Source: Botryllus schlosseri (Eukaryota). Taken from it: 64,000 bases of DNA. Below are positions 12,001 to 24,000 of the stretch, in pieces. Numbering within the stretch: the first letter of the stretch is position 1; every line of letters begins with the position of its first letter. The position numbers and the translations under genes were made by a program. The DNA is taken from NCBI GenBank assembly GCA_051294905.1, contig CM119372.1:7564001-7628000 (forward strand). The letters are read 5' to 3'. The notes below the pieces were generated by a model. The model was not told where the DNA came from, ran no database searches, and saw only the letters and a program-made list of their open reading frames with translations.

Positions 12001-15000
12001 ATTATAACAGATATATAGATAAAATTATACGTAACGCATTCCTCAACAGGTGTCCAGAAACCGGCCTTCGAGGAAACCGTACACGACAGCGCGCTCCTGC
12101 CGAGAAAGGGCGAGATCGGACAGGAGTGCTTCTACGCCCTTGCGTCGTGTCACTCGCTTGTCAGCATCGACGGGGAGATTTCGGGAGATCCGATCGATCT
12201 GGAGCTGTTCAAATCCACAAACTGGGTGCGTGAAGTCGCGAATTATTACGCGCGCCTTTGATTGACGCGTATTTTTTCCCGCGATAAGTCGGGGCGGTGA
12301 CATGAGAAATTGATATAGGACCAGAAGATGTTATGATCGGTTAATTAATTCAAAACTATAAATGGAATCCAGCATTTGCGCTAAACACATTACGATTGTT
12401 CACATCAATCATTATTATAATGGATTTTGCATGACTCGGAACCAAGTCATATGACTCGAGACTAGGACGGCCAAGACAGACATCTCATTGTAACATAGAA
12501 GAATAGTCAAGTCATCACATGATTGGTATTTAGTCTATCATTCCTGATACTTGGAAATAGGGTCAGAAACTGTTAGGACTGAGGAAAATCTCGATATTAT
12601 GAATGCGAGCCATTCTATATCACTCGAGCAGAGTTGAAAAAGTAGGTTGAACCGGATCGAACTCAAAGCTGAGCAGTGAACTCAATGACTTGGAGTCGGA
12701 CTCAAGTCACGACATTAAGACTCGGACTCGACCCTCTACTGTCTACTCACGGACTTGGACTCGGACTTGACACGGTGGTGAATTGAAAATGACTCGACTC
12801 GAGTCAAAACTTGAAAAGTGAGATTGACTCTGTTGCAACCCTGGGTATCCGTTCCAATGATGCTTCATTTGCAATATATTTCTAGGGCTATACAGCGTGC
12901 AGGCCCACTATATAATATATACTGAGCAGTGAGCGATAGATGTCCGATCAGCATAAGACGAATACAATAACCATCGAATTGTCTTACCCTCGATAGTCTG
13001 TGTTTTAAATCGTTTAGCGAAAGACCAGTATTCATAAGTCTATGCCTTGAAATGTACTTATGTACTACATTGGGAAGATGCTCTATACTTGGATTCTAGA
13101 AGTAATGCTGATTCACATAACAGCAAAAACCGACCAATGAGTTAGGCGTCTGGGTTGGACTTTACTTCAGGGTACCACGGGACATTGCGTGTAAACATTA
13201 TCCGCAATGTTGAGGAAAATTTTGAAAGGACGCACGCTGTCTCTCCTAGTTCAACGCCCCAACACCCGATGAAGAGAGCCACAGTATACGAACAAGACAA
13301 TGATCGCGTGGTATATTTGTAGGTTATAAGGTTGAGGCTATAAGCTAACAGCATCGTAAACACGGAGTTATCGTATGCCATCTATACTGCAATATAAATG
13401 TTCAAATATGTGCTATTGATGCAGTTGTAGTACAATCACAGTAGGAAAAAAGGTGTATATACTGTATATCTATGTCTATAATATTTGGTGGTGCATAATC
13501 CAAGGCTATATATATCTTTGGTACTTTTTTATTGTTATCAGAAATGGCTGGGTGTCACTAGTGGAGAATACTGTTAAAATTAACATGCAATTTATGGTCG
13601 ATAAAGCAGACTCGGTCGGCGGAAGCATAACATTTCTTGGTCTTTGCTATTTCGGTTCGCATTCGCACTGCAAATATCTTTTGAAATTGGCATATTAACA
13701 TACACAAATATTCGTAACGCGGTACAGCGTATCCCCCTCTCGGTGGAATTCGTAGTGATCAGTATAGCACGCTTACAGAGCCGTATCATCTCGCGACATT
13801 GAACCTAGTGATTCCCATACCAAAATTCCCTGTCCCTCTGTCGGATGCAGCTCCTTTTACGGATTTGGTTTTACCCGATTCCCGTGCAATGCTAGCTACA
13901 AGCGAGTTTGTTTCCTGTGTGTGTTTAAGTGCAGTTGGTACATATATATTTCTTAAATTGTCTTGAAGGCCCTCAGAAACGTGATCCCACCTTACTTGAG
14001 TATCTGACCTTCGATTTGAAGCGGCTTATACAGCACCGGACTATCACGATCAGCGTCAGGCCCAGAAGCAGCAGAATCCCGGGCCAGAGAATGCTGAAAT
14101 CAGAAGTGAAGATAGTCACTTGTGAACCTTATGTGAACCTAAATCGATCGTACATTGTTTTGATATATCATAAAAGCCAAGATAAAAGTTTGTCCATACT
14201 GTTCGGCGTAACAAGCCATGTCGTGTTCTCGACATGGGCAGTTGGCTGTTGCCGTGGTAATTGAGAGACGTATTCATAAAATGCCCAAGTAAATAAATAG
14301 CTGTAAAGCTGTTCCAATATATTCTTCGAAGTTTTATACAAGCGCCTTAAGCTAGATGCTATCTCTTGAATATCGGCTGAATATATCGCGGTTATATAGG
14401 TGAATGTGCTATAGTCATCGGTTTTATCGATATCGGCGGTCCAATATAGCGGTCGGGCTCGGAATGTCCCAAATTGTATTTTTACACCACGGAACACATC
14501 GCTAATATACTCTGATGTCATTATACGTTTATGGGTGGCATTCAATGTCCCAGGGTTGTAATGACTCGAGTCATGACTCGACTCGAGTCCGACTCGACTC
14601 ACGTTTTTCAGATGACTCGACTTGACTCGAGTCATTTTCTCAAAATACGGAAATGACTCGACTCGACTCGAGTCAATTTGTGTATTGACTCGACTTGGAC
14701 TCGAGTCATTGCGCATGACTCGAACCAAGTCATATGACTCGAGACTCAGAAGGCCAAGACCGACGTTTCATTGTAATTTCGAGGAATAGTAAAGTAATCA
14801 CACTATTGGGATTTCGTCTATTGGCACTGGTACTTGAAAATGCGTCCAGAAACTGCTAATAATGAGGAAAATTAGAATATTATAAATGCGAACCATTCGA
14901 TATCACCAAACAGAGTTATAAAAAGTGGATTTAACAAGTCTTAACTGTAAACTGGGCACTGTGGGCAGTCAACACAATGACTTGGACTCGACTCGAGTCA

Positions 15001-18000
15001 TAATACCATGACTCGGACTCGACCCTCCGCTCGGTGACTTGGACTCGGACTTGACTCGGTGGTCAAATGAAAATGACTCGACTTGACTCGAGTCAAAACT
15101 ATAAAACCGAGATTGACTTGTGACTCGGAGCCTTGTGACTTGGTTACAACCCTGAAATGTCCCTTGCATTATTTTGTTATATATAACTGCGCCACTATAT
15201 AAGCGGTTTTACGGCCACCGAATACTATCGATATAGTCGTTTAACACTTGGGAATTGAAAAATATGGACGTAATGGCATATTTGCTATAAATATTTGCAA
15301 ATATTAAATTTATATTCACAATATTACACATAAGGATGTTGTTCGTTGAAAGAAAGTTGATCAACACGTTACGTAAATACCTACCCATACGTGATGCTGT
15401 CGCGGTTGAAGTGTTTACTTATTATCACGTAGGCAAGGTTTCCCGGGTCGTAATAACACGGCAAGTGGATTCCGGGTCGGCCTATCGTCTTCTGCAAGTG
15501 CGACAATTCCCGGGATAATCTCTCCGTGTTCACGTTGCGCGTCGTACTGGTCGGTTGTAGCGTGCAAGGCACCTGTACGATGGAAAACTCCATATTGATT
15601 TCAGACGCAATATTGAATGGTGTTTTATATTGGTGTAATTATGTATTCCACGCAATCTTTGGCGATCGGAATAGACATTTCCTTCAACAGTTATCAAATA
15701 TAGGATGTTCGCAATGCATGCGTATTGGAAGAGTGTCATGACCAATTTGGATTCTATATAAGTAGATATCACACACTGTGCACTGCAGTAACAAAGCACT
15801 TATCCTTTTTCGGGGTGCTCAAGTTTTGGAATACTTCGGCAGTTTGGAGGTGAAACTACGTCTTTCAATTTACAATTGCATTCATTGGCATATTGATTTC
15901 TGAGAATCCGAATCCGAAAAATATGATCCAAAAATTCATGATAATCCTAGAAATCTCTTCAGAATCCGAAAATCCCGAAGAATCCTTATCGTACAGCCGA
16001 GCTGAGATACAATTAGTAGGTCATAGCCTCTACAAAGGGTATGTTGGGGTTAGCTGACTTATATTTGCTTGGACCGGGGCCTACGATATTGAATATCGTA
16101 GGCCCCGCTTGGACCTTTTACGGGACACCTTAGAGTGGCACCACTCCTATCACAAGTTATTCACTGTCCGTGTTTGGTTGTCGAGCTGGCGTTTTTTTTT
16201 TTGTTTCTTCTGACCTGAAATTAAAAGTCACGTCCAGTCAGAAGTCAGAACTATCAAAAAATATTCGAAACAAAACTTACAACAATTAGAAAATATCTAT
16301 AACAAAATCTGCAATAGAATCCGAATCCGATCCGGCCCGGCTGTCATAAAATTGTGCAAAATTCGGCCCGATTCCTATCCGTGTCCATCCGATGCTCATC
16401 ACTAGGGCGATTTTGTTTTTGCATGTCAAAATTGTAGCGTTAGGTCAACATTTTTCAAAATTGTTTACGAAGCCAAATTTTTTGACCTCTGCATTTCGTT
16501 TGTATCGTAGATTTTGCACTGTCTATGAACTTATCATTTGATATTTTACCGCTTGTAGCCTACCTTTGTAGACGGCCCATTGTCTGCTCATTGTGAATTA
16601 TAAACGATCAGATGAAACAAATAGGTTGACATGGTATTATGGTCAACGTACCACAATATCCTAACTGAAGCATGACTGCTTGGGCATTGCATGGTTCTTA
16701 TATCAAGAAGCGCATGATGAAAAATTGTGATGTAGACACTAGACAGCATTGTCAGAATGAAGCAACACGGTGCGTCACCAGCAGTGAATGCACAAATGCA
16801 CATGCACAACTTCAGTGTTGTCAGCCAACAACTGCTGCTGTTGAACGTTCTTTCTCCATTCTTGGCAAGCTACTTAGTAAGGACAGACACTTTCAGCCCG
16901 AGAATGTAGGAAAGTATCTTTCGTTGTACTACAACAAATTTCAATCATTTCTACCATAATACGTGATGTAACTACTGGAATTCTTAATAGTGCCAGATTT
17001 CGTTGAAATACTAGTGTTTGTTTTTTTTCAAGTTAAAATTTGTCAGTTTTTAAGCCAAAGACGTTTTTTCAAACCAAACTACTTCGTAAGGCCAGACAGT
17101 TTCAACCAGAAATGAAGATATGTAGTACAATTTTAACATTATGGGGGAAAACACCTAATTTGCATACGTGAAGTCAAAATTTGGTCAATATTCAGTTTTT
17201 TTAGTTCAAAAACAGTCATAATTTGGATTTTTTAGATCAAATTTTCCATTTTTTAGGTAAAAAAATCGCCCTACTCATCACTGAAATGAACCCGAATATT
17301 TTCGGCTCTTACAAGTTAGATTGGATAATACAAGATGTGTAGCGGTATCATAAGTGCGTGTTGTCTTGTAGGTCGTAAGTCTCAATTTACCTAGGGTGAG
17401 AAACTCAAGCTACGCCCCTTCATACCTCCTTATTGTTCATTCGGTATTTGAACAGCTTTTACCTGGAGTACTTGTCGATACGCATTGTGCTTAATGGTAC
17501 CGCTACACACCTGTACGTTTTGTAGTTCATTGTATCTCACAAGAGCTTGGACCACTTGTCTTGCATTTGATTTCGGGCCGCTCAATTTCGGATTGATTCC
17601 GTTTCGATGCTGCCAGTCTTCGTGAATCTTGATTTCCCCGTCCCCGACAAACCCTGCGGGGTAACGCGGATCATCCCACGACGACGTGGTCTGGTACACC
17701 GCGTATATCTTCAGACATAACTTGACGTCTTCGTCGTGACCGTTCTTGAAGCCGGCCGACCGCACGATATCGGATCTGGTGATGCGGCACTCCTGGAAAT
17801 TCAGACCGGATTCACTATATACACGATCGATCCCAGCGGGCCGTATCGTTAGCGAGACGCACGACTTGAATAATGGATTGCCAAACGGCATTATCCGATA
17901 GCCGCATAATGTAATTCACATTGTCGCTTGCTGCACATGTGAGCCGTTTCAAGGAAGGTCACCGCTAAAGGCTGATAATCACTGTCATTAGCGCCTGAAT

Positions 18001-21000
18001 AAGTAACACGACTCCGAAGGGAACGATCGTGCCTTTTGATACCTATGGATGTCAACCTTAAAGCCAAGATTTCAGTTACGTCGGTGTCTGGTCAGATTTT
18101 ACGTGTATCATACATTGTTATTCGCCGGATGGTTGTTGTTTGTTTGTCATATTCATGGTATTTTTTTACTTCAATGGTCATTGACACCAGGCCGATAGTC
18201 CTTGTTCCGTAGCTGACGATTTGTAGCGCGGCACACTTCCAGACATTCAAGGCTTCTGGCTTATTCACCGCATAGTATCTATATCAATAGTTTGGTACAA
18301 TCTAAATCGGGGGAGGGTAATCGAAAGCTATCGGGAATGTCTCAATTTTTAGTCCCGGAGCATCTCAAAATTCAGCAGTCAAGCTTCAAATGGCCGGACC
18401 AGTTGCAATATTGCATCACCGGTGTACGAGTTCATATTTTGGAGGTTTATCTGGGCTCCTCCTCGCCATATGATCCGCGTGAGCGGTGTCGTAAAAAGCC
18501 TAGAAGTGTGCCGTGCTACAAGTCTCAGATACGGAATCAAAATAAAGAATATCGGCCTGGTGTAAATAACCATTGCAGATGAATTACAGCATGAATACCA
18601 CAAACATCAACAGCCGGTATGCATCCGTGACAGTACTATAAACCCGATAAGCGCCGCGTTATCGTTGAATTACGGCAGGACGCAAAGAGATGAGGAATAA
18701 CTCACGGTTTGATGCAGATACTGATTGTTGAGAGCCGGCAGTATAGTCGTCGTGGCCAAGATGGCGAATAGCACTACTGAAAGCACAACAAGTACGTATC
18801 CCGTCTGAATTGTCCTAACCTCGCCGGCTGAGAACCTGTATTCCGCCATGCCACTCCAAGGCCACCCGAAACCACTCTTGAGCTTGCTGTACGGTATTAC
18901 GCTCCGCCGCCTGGACGGTCTGATGTCCATATCGAGCTGTCATCGATTTATAAGGGCAACGCGAAATTGACGTATGATTGCAGATTAATCAAGCACTCGA
19001 AATCCAATTGATAACACAGGTTATGAACTGTTGCATGAAATCATGGAGGATATTATTAACTTGCACGCGAACGGCGAACGGGAGCAATCTGTCAAGAAGC
19101 TTATGGACATTGAATATTGATTTAAAGCGTTCTCTCTGAGCACTTTTTACATTTCATTGGAATGCTGTATGATTTAATAAATTGGCTCGGTATTCGGGCA
19201 TTTAATCTTCTATGAAGGAATCGATATATATTGAGCATGAATATAAATTTTACGGAAAAGCCAATTTATGCTGTACGAACATAAAATTCTCGAACTACCG
19301 TCAAACGTTAGTAATTTGATCAAGAGCCGGTAACGCCATCGTCGAGTCCTCGCTAGAGCAACGGTCATTAGAAAAATCAATTGGCTCTCTGAAATATCAC
19401 TGGATTTACACGCTACTGAGGATATATTGAAAATGAAGGTATCGTTAGAACTAATGTATAGTAAATTGTGATGGCGTGCATGCTTCACTTTGCAAGCATA
19501 AAGGTCAAAATATTTCACTCAGTCGAAAAAAGGACCGGAGCTTCCTATGTCAGTTTGCATGTTTCCAAGCATGATCGTCATCTGACAGCACACTAAACAA
19601 ATTATTAAACTGTAGTAGTACAGCAGCTGACCATAGCACTAACATAATAGATGGAAAAATCTCTGACAATCTCTCTTCTTCCGCCACTACGATGTTTCTG
19701 AGTCTAGTTATGCGCTATATTTTACAGTCTTCTTATACGATGTACTATGCAATAGGAATTCGTGATCAATCGTTGCTGTATTTCAAGCTCAAGGGGGAGG
19801 ATATTATTTTGAGCTTTTCCACATTCCATACTTATTAATTGCATTGGCATTGCAACCACTCCGCCGCTGAAACAGACCTAACAGACTGCCGCGTATGCAT
19901 TAAAGAAAATCTGTACTAACCGTACCATTAAACGGATATTCCAATGCCTTCCTCTTGTACAAATATATAAAGACGGGAAAGGACATTCTTTCGCTCTTAA
20001 TTGCTCTTTCATGAATTATTCACGTACAGCTTTGTGATTAATTTTGCGACAAGAGAGGACATCAGCCGTGACCGCAATGTATTTTGCATCCATTTAGTAC
20101 GTACTTATCCGTTTGCAATTTCGCGCATAATTTAAAATACAGCCGCCAAAACAGCCTATATATATAACGCAAACAACTGCGTATGATAAGCATGTTCAGT
20201 GTACCGTTCATTCGACGTATGCTATTAGCGAAAAGAGTGCGTAATCGCACCCTAAAGGTGGTACACGAGAATATAGCCTACTGCAGAATTCAGAAACCCC
20301 GCTCTCGGGGCTTCTTAGCGACTGAACAGCATTTCCTAATGTGTGTGTTTCAATACAGAGCTTAATTGAGCCAATCATCAATATAAATTGGCGTTTTTAT
20401 ATCTCTGTATATAGTTATTCGCTAGTTTAGTTGTTTTGGTTACTTCACGGAAGAGACGGTTGTGATTGATTCATGATTATACCTACCAACGTCCCCATGT
20501 GCCCATACCTTCCTTCGCGCTTCATGTCTGCTTATTCCAGGATGTCAGACATCATTTGGATTACATTGTTGTATTTGTTTGTTTGTTTCTGTATTTTATT
20601 AGCGCTTATAAACACTTGGGTCATTTGCGCCCGCACAGTAATTTTCGTAAGGTCTTTCCGCTTTTCTTGCGTCCTTTTCTGGTCTTTTTGCTGCCATCTT
20701 CCTGGAGTTCGGCTCTCTCTTCCTCTGGGCTTATCAAGAAGCTGTATTTACAGCGGGATCGGCGATGAGGAGCCCACATTGTTGTATTTGATTTATACCG
20801 TGGTGTATTCCTGAGTTTTAGTTTCTATTTTCATGTACAATATTTACGCTAACCATTCACGTGCCAATTCCTTGCATAAAATCGCCCTTACAAGATAGCT
20901 TTGTATTTAGAAAATGACAAAACCCAAGGAAGACTGGTGTTCGGAATGTAACTTCGCTTTTTCCGCGGCGGAGGACGACGTAAGAGTGGAATGGAACTTT

Positions 21001-24000
21001 GGTCTAAATAGCGATAATATCACCATCTCGCCATGCTTGCTTATAGGAAATCAAATTAGCATTGGCGAGAGTGTATCAATTCAATTCCGCGATTAGGAGA
21101 ATGAGTGTGATCGCAAAAGGGATTGGCGATGATCGATATCATGTTTACGTGAAAGGGGCGCCGGAAACGATCGCCAAGCAATGCAATCAGTGTACCGGTA
21201 AGGTCATTCACTCAATGAATAATGTCGCGCATGTAGTGTACAATCGGATGTCATGGGACGTGAATGGTCACGGTAACGGTAGTATAGTATACGCATAGAT
21301 GGTCAAAGAATAGTCAGATTCGGCACTCTAGTAAATTGCCCAAAATGATGACGAAGACCCGAGGGCTGCGACGCGATTCATGGGCTAAGCTTTTCCCTTA
21401 CTTCTGCAGAAATAAAGGGAATAGGATCATTCTTGGGACTAATTGCGTTTGCAGATGGTGTGTTTGTGGGATCCGTGACCTTTACAGCACAACACTGTAT
21501 TACTGCACTAGGTCTTTATAAGCAATAAACCTTTCAATATATAAGAGTAGCCAATATGAAGACATAGTAAGACTACTTTAGGCAGAAGAAGAAATTAATG
21601 GTATGAAAAGTACTCAAGAAACTAGTTTTGGAAAGTAGATTTGGTCTATGGCGTCGCATTCCAATGCAAAATGAACTAACGACACCACAAATGCCTTCAA
21701 TTTTCAAAGATATATTCATGTATCACAATGCAAGGGGATATTTCGGCAGATGATGACGATTTCACGCATACAGGTGATGTAACCATATGTCCAAACTACT
21801 TTTTACTGTATAAAATCCACATTGACAAAAATAAGTATAGTTTTGCCGAAAACATTAGGAAGTGGACTTGAAAGACTTGGACTCGAAAACAAAACAACTT
21901 GAGTACTCAGTACAAGTACGCTAACCTATTTGAGAACTCTCAAAAAGTAGAAGTACACTTCATTGCTGAAAAACTCCTGGTATACATCGCCGGATGAAGG
22001 GATTAAATTTTTTTAAATAAAAGTTCAAATCTACCGTTCATTTCCTATCATGTCCAAGTCCGGTGGTCCCGTAATGGCTGAAATTTGTTTCAAAATTCCA
22101 CGTCCTAGTCCAGCAGTTCTCAACCTTTTTTGACATGCGCCCCCCTTGGCGATGGTCAAAAAAATTGCGCCCCCTGACCCCCTGCCCTTATCGTCATGAC
22201 AAAAAGAGCGCATAGTATAGTAGCATAGTATACATATATGTATATATCATACGACAAGTTTGAATCCGCATTCCAGTTGTTGGGTCTTTTACATTTCTGA
22301 CAAATTTCCCCGAAACTTGTTTGAAGATAACAAAATTACATTGAACAGGACATCAATTTATTTCAAGGTAGCTTGCACTGCGACTAATCCTAATGCTGGT
22401 AGTGACTACAGAGAGCACGGCGTCGTTCTGTCCTGCCATGCTAAATTTGATCAGTTTTGCAATTGAATTAATTTGTGTTGATTTAGGGTAGCCTAATTGA
22501 GGGCGAAACCGGGCAACCATATTGTCTTAGGCCAGGAGCGGGCAACTTCTCCAGTCGACGGGGCCGGATATAGGAAAATTAGGTACTTGGCGCGCCGGAT
22601 TGCTAAATCGATACATTATTCGCCTATTGGTCCACATATACAAGGAATAAATAGTATTTAATGAATGTATTTTAACGGCAGCAATGTCACTTCAAAGCCA
22701 TTTCTCGCCGATAATGACGAAGACAATTTGGATTTGAGAACAGCATTGTCATACAGGCGCCGCCATGTCTGCTTCCCTCTGATCAAAACACACGGTGCAA
22801 TCCCTAATAAAGATTCCGAGGCGTTCTATAAGCCCGGTTATCCAGATTTATCAAGATTTCAATTCATGATTAATATATGGTAAATGCCGATAAGGCCAGT
22901 ATTCTCGCTACGACGAGCTTGCCCGTAAGCTCTACTCCCGCATGCTGCGCACACACGTATATAATAACATACGTTCACTAAAATTTGACGTTTAAGCGAG
23001 TAGTGGGGAATTTCGGCAGACTGGGACCATGGACCACATTATCATGTATGTTGCCCGTCCCTGCTTAGGCAGTGCAGTTCGCCAGCTATTAACAACAGCT
23101 ACCCAGCGCACCGAGCTTTGGGCTTCTGCCAAAGCTATGTATACATGCTCAAAACGAAACTAATATTCTTATGCCAATGCCTATCGGTTATCCAAAACGC
23201 GATTTCTCAATAGGCTTGATTATTTCTTGTCCGAAGCAATGACCCGTAGCCAACTTATGATTTTTATGTCCATCTCCTCTCAAGATCCATTCTCTTCATA
23301 CCATTTAAAATACGTACCGTTTCAGTGCCTGCTAATTTCGAGGAGAAACTCCTGAGCTACACTCGGCAAGGATATCGCGTGCTGGCATTAGCCACCAAGT
23401 AAGTATATATCACGCAGACGCGCACCGCAAAACGTTTCGTTATATCCCGTATTCGGTCAACTTTTGTCGACGATTGGGGTACGGATTTTGAAGTGCCGGT
23501 AATTTTCCTGGCAATATATTACTAATGCGCCGGTACAGCGGATTCGTACGCGAAAAAAGTTTAGCGGTTCGCTTTGAACCGTATAGTAGTATATAATCTG
23601 TATATTTTAGATTTATTTGCAGTTCACTAGATATATTTGGGATATTGTGACAGTTCGAGTGCCTAGCTACTAAAAGTATGGTATACGTAAGCATGTTTCG
23701 CGGTCTAAATTGCCATTGCCCCTCAGACGCACTTGGGAGCAGATGAATCCGCCTAAATCTACTAAAGTAGAAGGATTTAGACAGCATTACGGCGTCAGTT
23801 CATCTTTACATCATATTACAAATCGATTCTTCGCAAAACTAGATTGGATATTACTATCGCGACGCCCAATTTCAACGAAATCTCCTGCCGCGTCGCGAAA
23901 GGAATGTGTGTACATTGTACAGTGTAGTATATTCCACATGCACACCCAAAAGGTGGTACATAGAAGAGTGTACCGGTCTGGTCATGGACGAATCGATTTT

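Follow-up and report, generated by a model that had tools for sequence, protein, structure and literature searches.

Structure of a gene nested on the minus strand

The window examined here is a 64,000-nucleotide stretch of the Botryllus schlosseri genome (GenBank assembly GCA_051294905.1, contig CM119372.1, positions 7,564,001 to 7,628,000 of the forward strand), to which all coordinates without a contig name refer. Within it, an intron of a plus-strand gene that by homology encodes a P5B-type ATPase contains a second gene on the opposite strand, called the nested gene below, whose product resembles the auxiliary beta subunits (KCNMB1-4; Pfam family CaKB, PF03185) of the big-conductance potassium (BK) channel Slo1.

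The initial annotation described four minus-strand exons (18930-18706, 17792-17511, 15572-15385, and 14093-13973), joined in phase at GT-AG junctions into a 271-residue protein with two transmembrane (TM) segments, and remarked that a list of open reading frames (ORFs) had passed the gene over. Both statements hold on the sequence. When the minus strand was inspected from 13800 to 19100, every one of the four exons was found to be flanked by AG and GT, with phases of 0/0/0/2, and joining them gave an 816-nt ORF encoding 271 amino acids with two hydrophobic segments. An in-frame stop lies three codons 5′ of the ATG, and the ORF list, with its 30-residue minimum, indeed gives the exons as mere fragments. 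The four exons are real, but the model ended too early: a fifth exon and a 76-nt intron had been missed. Removal of this intron (13990-13915) leaves the frame open through exon 5 to a stop at 13788-13786. Since the stop of the four-exon model (13975-13973) sits inside the intron, the expressed model has five exons and encodes 308 amino acids, and the 271-residue protein is the form that retains intron 4. Transcript contigs end near 13476, past a poly(A) signal. The parts of the gene are as follows.

18706-19051, minus strand: exon 1; coding sequence from the ATG at 18930-18928, 5′ untranslated region (UTR) to at least 19051; encodes the 44-residue N-terminus and TM1
17793-18705, minus strand: intron 1; 913 nt, GT-AG, donor GT at 18705; repeat at about 18422-18618
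17511-17792, minus strand: exon 2; 94 residues, first half of the loop, with Cys77 (ECRIT) and Cys101 (LCLKIY)
15573-17510, minus strand: intron 2; 1938 nt, GT-AG; repeats at about 16452-17042
15385-15572, minus strand: exon 3; 62 residues and 2 nt, second half of the loop, with Cys172 (VPCTL) and Cys208 (LPCYYDPGN)
14094-15384, minus strand: intron 3; 1291 nt, GT-AG; repeat of about 605 bp at 14551-15155, resembling a miniature inverted-repeat transposable element (MITE)
13991-14093, minus strand: exon 4; WP motif, TM2 (residues 231-253), and start of the C-terminal tail
13915-13990, minus strand: intron 4; 76 nt, GT-AG, missed by the initial annotation
13476-13914, minus strand: exon 5; last 42 residues of the tail, stop at 13788-13786, and 3′ UTR with AATAAA at 13533-13528

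Transcript evidence for splicing

Exons 2 to 5 are joined in a 590-nt contig (contig 11) from run X3, which matches 17660-17508, 15569-15385, 14093-13990, and 13913-13766 in succession. This contig spans the exon 2/exon 3 junction, where GTG fits either side and is compatible with GT-AG, crosses the exon 3/exon 4 junction (15385/14093) exactly, and joins 13990 to 13913, splicing out intron 4 with a single G that fits either side. Two of the three junctions proposed initially, 17511/15572 and 15385/14093, are thereby confirmed; the third, 18706/17792, has indirect support from the contigs of run X5. There, contig 19 (183 nt) covers 17639-17791 and ends at the exon 2 acceptor, its 30 leftover letters being unread, contig 21 ends at 18705, and contig 20 continues exon 1 into intron 1 as an unspliced branch. 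Because 30 is k − 1 for a graph of 31-mers, this branching is the pattern that spliced and unspliced forms would leave together, and it fits the exon 1/exon 2 junction. Exon 1 is further covered by contigs from X3 (18714-19051) and X1 (18640-18953), exon 5 is covered by X3 contigs 9-11, and an X1 contig (13939-14099) runs unspliced across intron 4.

In X3, depth ranges from 3 to 19 on the exons and the 3′ end and is zero on the unique parts of the introns (15664-16254 and 17831-18421), as expected of RNA. Words from exon 2 are present in six small RNA-like assemblies from three studies. No reads fell on the nested-gene exons in the 6% of bulk RNA run X23 that was sampled, which is no evidence of silence and indicates that expression is low or restricted.

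A retrocopy was considered as the source of the spliced contig and is ruled out, because the exon 2/exon 3 and exon 3/exon 4 junction sequences are absent from the genome even when up to three mismatches are allowed.

Membership in the CaKB family

Kyte-Doolittle hydropathy in 19-residue windows exceeds 1.6 only at residues 38-68 and 228-258 of the 308-residue protein, placing the two segments at about 45-67 and 231-253. The layout comprises a basic N-terminus of 44 residues, TM1, a loop of about 160 residues, the WP motif, TM2, and a tail of 55 residues, which is the arrangement of two TM segments flanking a large loop with short termini that is expected of a CaKB protein; the membrane orientation is a prediction.

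Pfam was scanned with single exons only, at E-values up to 10. Exon 1 matches CaKB at 18.8 bits (profile positions 3-41) and exon 4 at 11.9 bits (positions 166-186), the two being colinear, and exons 2 and 3 scanned singly give no CaKB match. The spliced protein was compared with a 29-member CaKB hidden Markov model (HMM) built without it, and scores 62.7 bits in one colinear domain (residues 43-267, HMM positions 22-207), against a best score of 3.3 bits among 1000 shuffled sequences. A second profile, A3, is an alignment of 24 of the 36 relatives recovered by a full HMMER search with the paralogue on contig C14 (described below); all 24 members match Pfam CaKB, and the profile matches the solved BK beta2 and beta4 chains at an E-value of about 3e-35. 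Aligned to A3 by hhalign, the spliced protein reaches a probability of 97.8% (E 1e-12, 162 columns), and the single exons fall in order along it: exon 1 on columns 34-58, exon 2 on 65-103, exon 3 on 142-178 (E 3.8e-6, probability 87%), and exon 4 on 183-197.

Motifs near the membrane mark the family, namely C-x-[VI]-T following TM1, PCL-x-[IV] and C-[YF]-[YF]-x-P, as well as W-P where TM2 begins, and the nested-gene protein keeps C-x-[IV]-T after TM1, CLKIY, PCYYDP, and LWP. Its segments ECRITRS, (K)[18 protein letters not shown], and ILWPGILL align to the family motif columns, the aligned motifs being ECRIT after TM1, [15 protein letters not shown], and ILWP. The loop holds four cysteines (77, 101, 172, and 208), which align to C1, C5, C6/7, and C8 of the eight-cysteine pattern of beta4. 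Invariant or nearly invariant cysteine columns in A3 are C50, C65, C77, C123, C128, and C155, and beta2-4 have eight loop cysteines; beta1 likewise has four only. The even number is compatible with two disulfides.

These matches place the nested-gene protein in the CaKB (BK beta) family as a very divergent and rapidly evolving member, and the BK-beta-like identity originally put forward is borne out. A reading in which there is no real gene, and the exons reflect chance open frames, a mis-assembly, or a retrocopy, would draw on the shortness of each exon and the weakness of its matches when taken alone. We consider it very improbable, as the spliced contig uses exactly the predicted junctions, no retrocopy exists in the genome, and the colinear profile match exceeds the best shuffle by about 60 bits. 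We have high confidence in how the gene is built and spliced and in its place in the CaKB family, which are observations.

Divergence and constraint

No family member shares more than about 22-28% identity with the nested-gene protein. Among single sequences it matches P0033 best (43 bits), followed by Branchiostoma P0022 (33 bits), whose match is nearly full length. The protein has no supported position and no supported sister group in the maximum-likelihood family tree; a weak pairing with the copy on contig C15 (85/86) was flagged as possible long-branch attraction. A word-based search with A3 returned no vertebrate KCNMB or TipE sequences, so the tree was computed without them. Two further searches were narrower in reach: a word-based protein search with the exon 2 frame returned nothing, its length filter of 89-282 residues being one that would miss a 308-residue model, and a search with A1, a composite alignment of exon pieces and the C14 paralogue that MAFFT had misaligned, returned only P0001 (the C14 orthologue) and P0002.

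P0002, an ORF from a close relative in the Logan collection, runs open from exon 4 across the short intron into exon 5, and permits a comparison at the protein level over exons 4-5. The coding parts of these exons are 93% identical to it, with 37 of 39 residues identical in exon 4 and 38 of 42 in the coding part of exon 5, and they differ by an in-frame indel of three residues. Beyond the nested-gene stop only about 62% of residues are identical, and an indel in the short intron breaks the frame. This comparison offers modest but real evidence of constraint at the sequence level.

The first 18 codons of intron 4 are 17/18 identical to P0002; the relative's retained intron stays in frame without a stop, where Botryllus has TGA. 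This similarity could mean that intron 4 serves as an alternative segment coding for the C-terminus, or just that little divergence has occurred between the two sequences.

These data bear on whether the nested gene is decaying while still transcribed and spliced, as a paralogue that the three other CaKB genes of the genome have made redundant and that evolves under relaxed constraint. Such a state would account for the longest branch of the tree, the low expression, and the unspliced contigs found beside spliced ones, and the stop differs in position from the ORF of P0002, which is open past it. All five exons are open, however, all four introns are GT-AG, and the hallmark motifs are intact; the contrast between 93% coding identity and about 62% past the stop, together with a coding indel that preserves the frame, also speaks against decay, which we regard as quite unlikely.

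Other CaKB-like genes and Slo1 in the genome

The genome (495.5 Mb, 219 contigs) holds at least four CaKB-like genes, the nested gene and the following three.

C14:6014285-6015001: C14 paralogue (L001/L003; ORF L001:784-2121:-); single exon, 445 residues, long C-terminal tail
C15:23946915-23947469: C15 paralogue (L004); single exon; 64.8 bits against the A3 family profile
C2:12704586-12705686: C2 paralogue (L005/L006); multi-exon CaKB-like gene

All belong to the same family, and two of the three are single-exon genes, in contrast to the five exons of the nested gene. The C14 paralogue, detected by a whole-genome scan with PF03185, passes the Pfam cut-off at 38.8 bits, and its similarity to the nested-gene protein is marginal (BLASTP 31.6 bits, around TM2 only). 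Its best named relative is a Styela clava protein at 50% identity, followed by a Ciona savignyi fragment. In the tree it groups with proteins of Styela, Branchiostoma, Acropora, Nematostella, and the skate Rhinoraja longicauda, all of them labeled 'uncharacterized', which points to an unnamed, ancient BK-beta-like sub-family that survives in at least one vertebrate.

Exons of Slo1 lie on contig C16, and their best matches in the PDB are BK channels. At L008 (C16:13869497-13869610), 0.8 Mb from Slo1, a second match to PF03493, the BK-alpha domain, contains an in-frame TAA; it may represent a broken copy, or else a paralogue of Slo in which the match extends over an exon boundary. That one genome carries four or more CaKB-like genes, at widely differing degrees of divergence, should be useful for annotating ion-channel auxiliary subunits in tunicates and for work on which of these proteins pairs with Slo1.

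Comparison with known auxiliary subunits and proposed function

KCNMB1-4, which have been solved together with Slo1 (6v22, 9czh), share with the nested-gene protein two TM segments around a large cysteine-bearing loop, the CY(Y/F)xP motif and the WP before TM2, and a colinear profile match. The nested-gene protein differs in having a loop that exceeds theirs by about 30-40 residues and carries an insert at residues 112-170, in identity that does not rise above the low values given earlier, and in lacking the C2-C4 cluster, the proline before C5, and any N-glycosylation sequon. The nested gene further differs in its five exons and its antisense position inside another gene.

The second point of comparison is the insect TipE/TEH group, distant homologues of Slo-beta (PMC3240667). 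TipE and TEH1-4 have the same plan of two TM segments and a loop, and the TipE cluster, too, sits inside an intron of a host gene, CG18675 (PMC3240667). Transcriptional interference or co-regulation between nested gene and host, raised initially as a possibility for the Botryllus locus, is not supported; in the TipE cluster, the one parallel that has been studied, the expression of nested genes and host is poorly correlated (PMC3240667). No exon of the nested gene, each scanned singly against the Pfam profiles, matches TipE at E-values up to 10, and the loop lacks the EGF-like modules found in TEH3/4; on these features the protein does not fall with TipE. The host in Botryllus is not CG18675, so nesting in an intron arose independently of the TipE cluster.

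We propose that the locus holds a functional, low-expressed gene of five exons, running from about 19051 to 13476 on the minus strand, antisense within the P5B (ATP13A2-like) intron. Its product is a membrane protein of 308 residues, and an intron-retaining variant of 271 residues is also possible. By analogy with vertebrate beta1-4, both termini would be cytosolic and the loop extracellular, with two disulfides, and the protein would flank the voltage-sensor domains of the Slo1 tetramer, where it would adjust the channel's gating, pharmacology, or surface expression. We assign this BK-modulating function, which is argued from analogy, a probability of roughly 0.5.

Several observations weigh against the proposal. 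At the level of the gene, the exon 1/exon 2 junction is supported only indirectly, the runs that supplied the transcript contigs were labeled as RNA by guess only, and expression is low, with contig depths of 3-19 and zero exon reads in the 6% sample of bulk RNA. At the level of the family, none of the single exons reaches the Pfam CaKB cut-off of 25.1 bits, and the protein collections yielded neither a full-length orthologue from another species nor an annotated counterpart. The loop lacks the C2-C4 cluster and one of C6/C7, the proline that the family conserves before C5 is replaced, and a search of the loop for an N-glycosylation sequon found none. The terminal branch of the protein, at 2.61, is also the longest in the family tree, which fits relaxed constraint or a changed function. 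Finally, the channels that the insect relatives TipE and TEH regulate are sodium channels, not Slowpoke (PMC3240667).

Given its long branch, its missing cysteines, and three paralogues that look more canonical, the protein may have changed partner, as in TipE, or have come under relaxed constraint. The protein might keep the CaKB fold and no longer serve BK, acting instead as an auxiliary subunit of another channel, such as a voltage-gated sodium channel (NaV), or in a lineage-specific role unrelated to channels. Besides the branch length, the protein lacks half of the cysteines that the family conserves in the loop, and it lacks glycosylation sites; any of the three other genes could serve Slo1, and partner switching has been demonstrated within the superfamily (PMC3240667). 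Nevertheless, the exons yield no TipE match, the loop has no EGF-like insert, and this protein shows its strongest conservation in the motifs next to TM1 and TM2, just as the family profile does; we take a role away from BK to be possible, if somewhat unlikely. A more specific version holds that a four-cysteine paralogue has left BK and become a tunicate-specific subunit of another channel or a copy restricted to certain cell types, with its position in the ATP13A intron conserved among tunicates and its expression tied to the host. This we think unlikely. If it were true, it would represent a second, independent case of a partner switch combined with intron nesting in the Slo-beta/TipE superfamily.

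Bearing on the origin of the family

The nested gene had initially been given special value for the origin of BK beta subunits. That value is not supported, as the family is already known from amphioxus, a hemichordate, a cnidarian, a sponge, and choanoflagellates. CaKB-like proteins named as such at NCBI include 'beta-2/3/4-like' and KCNMB3 in Branchiostoma, 'beta-4-like' in Ptychodera, 'beta-4' in Nematostella, and 'beta-3-like' in Oscarella. Unnamed relatives occur in the annelids Capitella, Owenia, and Paralvinella and in the priapulid Priapulus, and others in the choanoflagellates Salpingoeca urceolata and Stephanoeca diplocostata (P0034, P0023, and P0024). Two of the choanoflagellate proteins, P0034 and P0023, match Pfam CaKB, so the family seems to predate animals. 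A Ciona gene has been called 'KCNMB3' (PMC8803312); beyond this mention in passing, our literature search turned up no work on the BK beta subunits of tunicates or amphioxus.

The nested-gene protein is more divergent than any of the invertebrate and choanoflagellate CaKB-like proteins in the databases, the sequences from which the profile that recognizes it was built. With the longest branch and no supported position in the tree, it does not stand as an ancestral representative, and a branch of such length means that the gene says little about family origin. The locus adds an apparently unannotated, expressed gene to the CaKB family, as an extra copy and not as a key to its beginnings. The picture of family origin is unchanged: CaKB can be traced to sponges, cnidarians, and choanoflagellates, and the nested copy is the most derived seen here.

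The host ATPase gene

The nested transcript (13476-19051, minus strand) lies between plus-strand exons of the host gene.

12019-12225, plus strand: host exon 5′ of the nested gene; ends in ...LELFKSTNW before GT at 12226
20911-21295, plus strand: host coding region past the nested gene; AG at 20909-20910, with ...RRMSVIAKG...YVKGAPETI within 21047-21295

The best PDB matches of the exon ending at 12225 are 7op5, a P5B-ATPase, and ATP13A2 residues 503-546, and a late host exon matches ATP13A2 at an E-value of 7e-14, as against 2e-5 for P5A enzymes. On these matches the host is a P5B (ATP13A2-like) ATPase gene. Past the nested gene, the first host exon confirmed by homology lies at about 21047-21295. 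The frame at 20911-21093 has no homology in the PDB, so the host acceptor could lie up to about 140 nt further on. Of the intron originally drawn at 12226-20910 in an ATP13A gene, the antisense nesting within a P5B intron stands with either acceptor, and the exact acceptor at 20910 is plausible but not proven.

Repeats in the introns

The introns of the nested gene had been described as filled with transposable elements, and repeats are indeed found at 14551-15155, 16452-17042, and 18422-18618. The first is a repeat of about 605 bp with more than 4000 candidate copies in a first look at the genome; its ends form inverted self-matches of about 160 bp, and it is non-autonomous and MITE-like. The 40 copies that were scored are 93-95% identical, so the burst looks young. 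In all of the RNA-like runs, contig depths on this repeat are in the thousands. Contig depth is also very high at 16452-17042 and 18422-18618 in every run compared, and these are presumably other repeat families.

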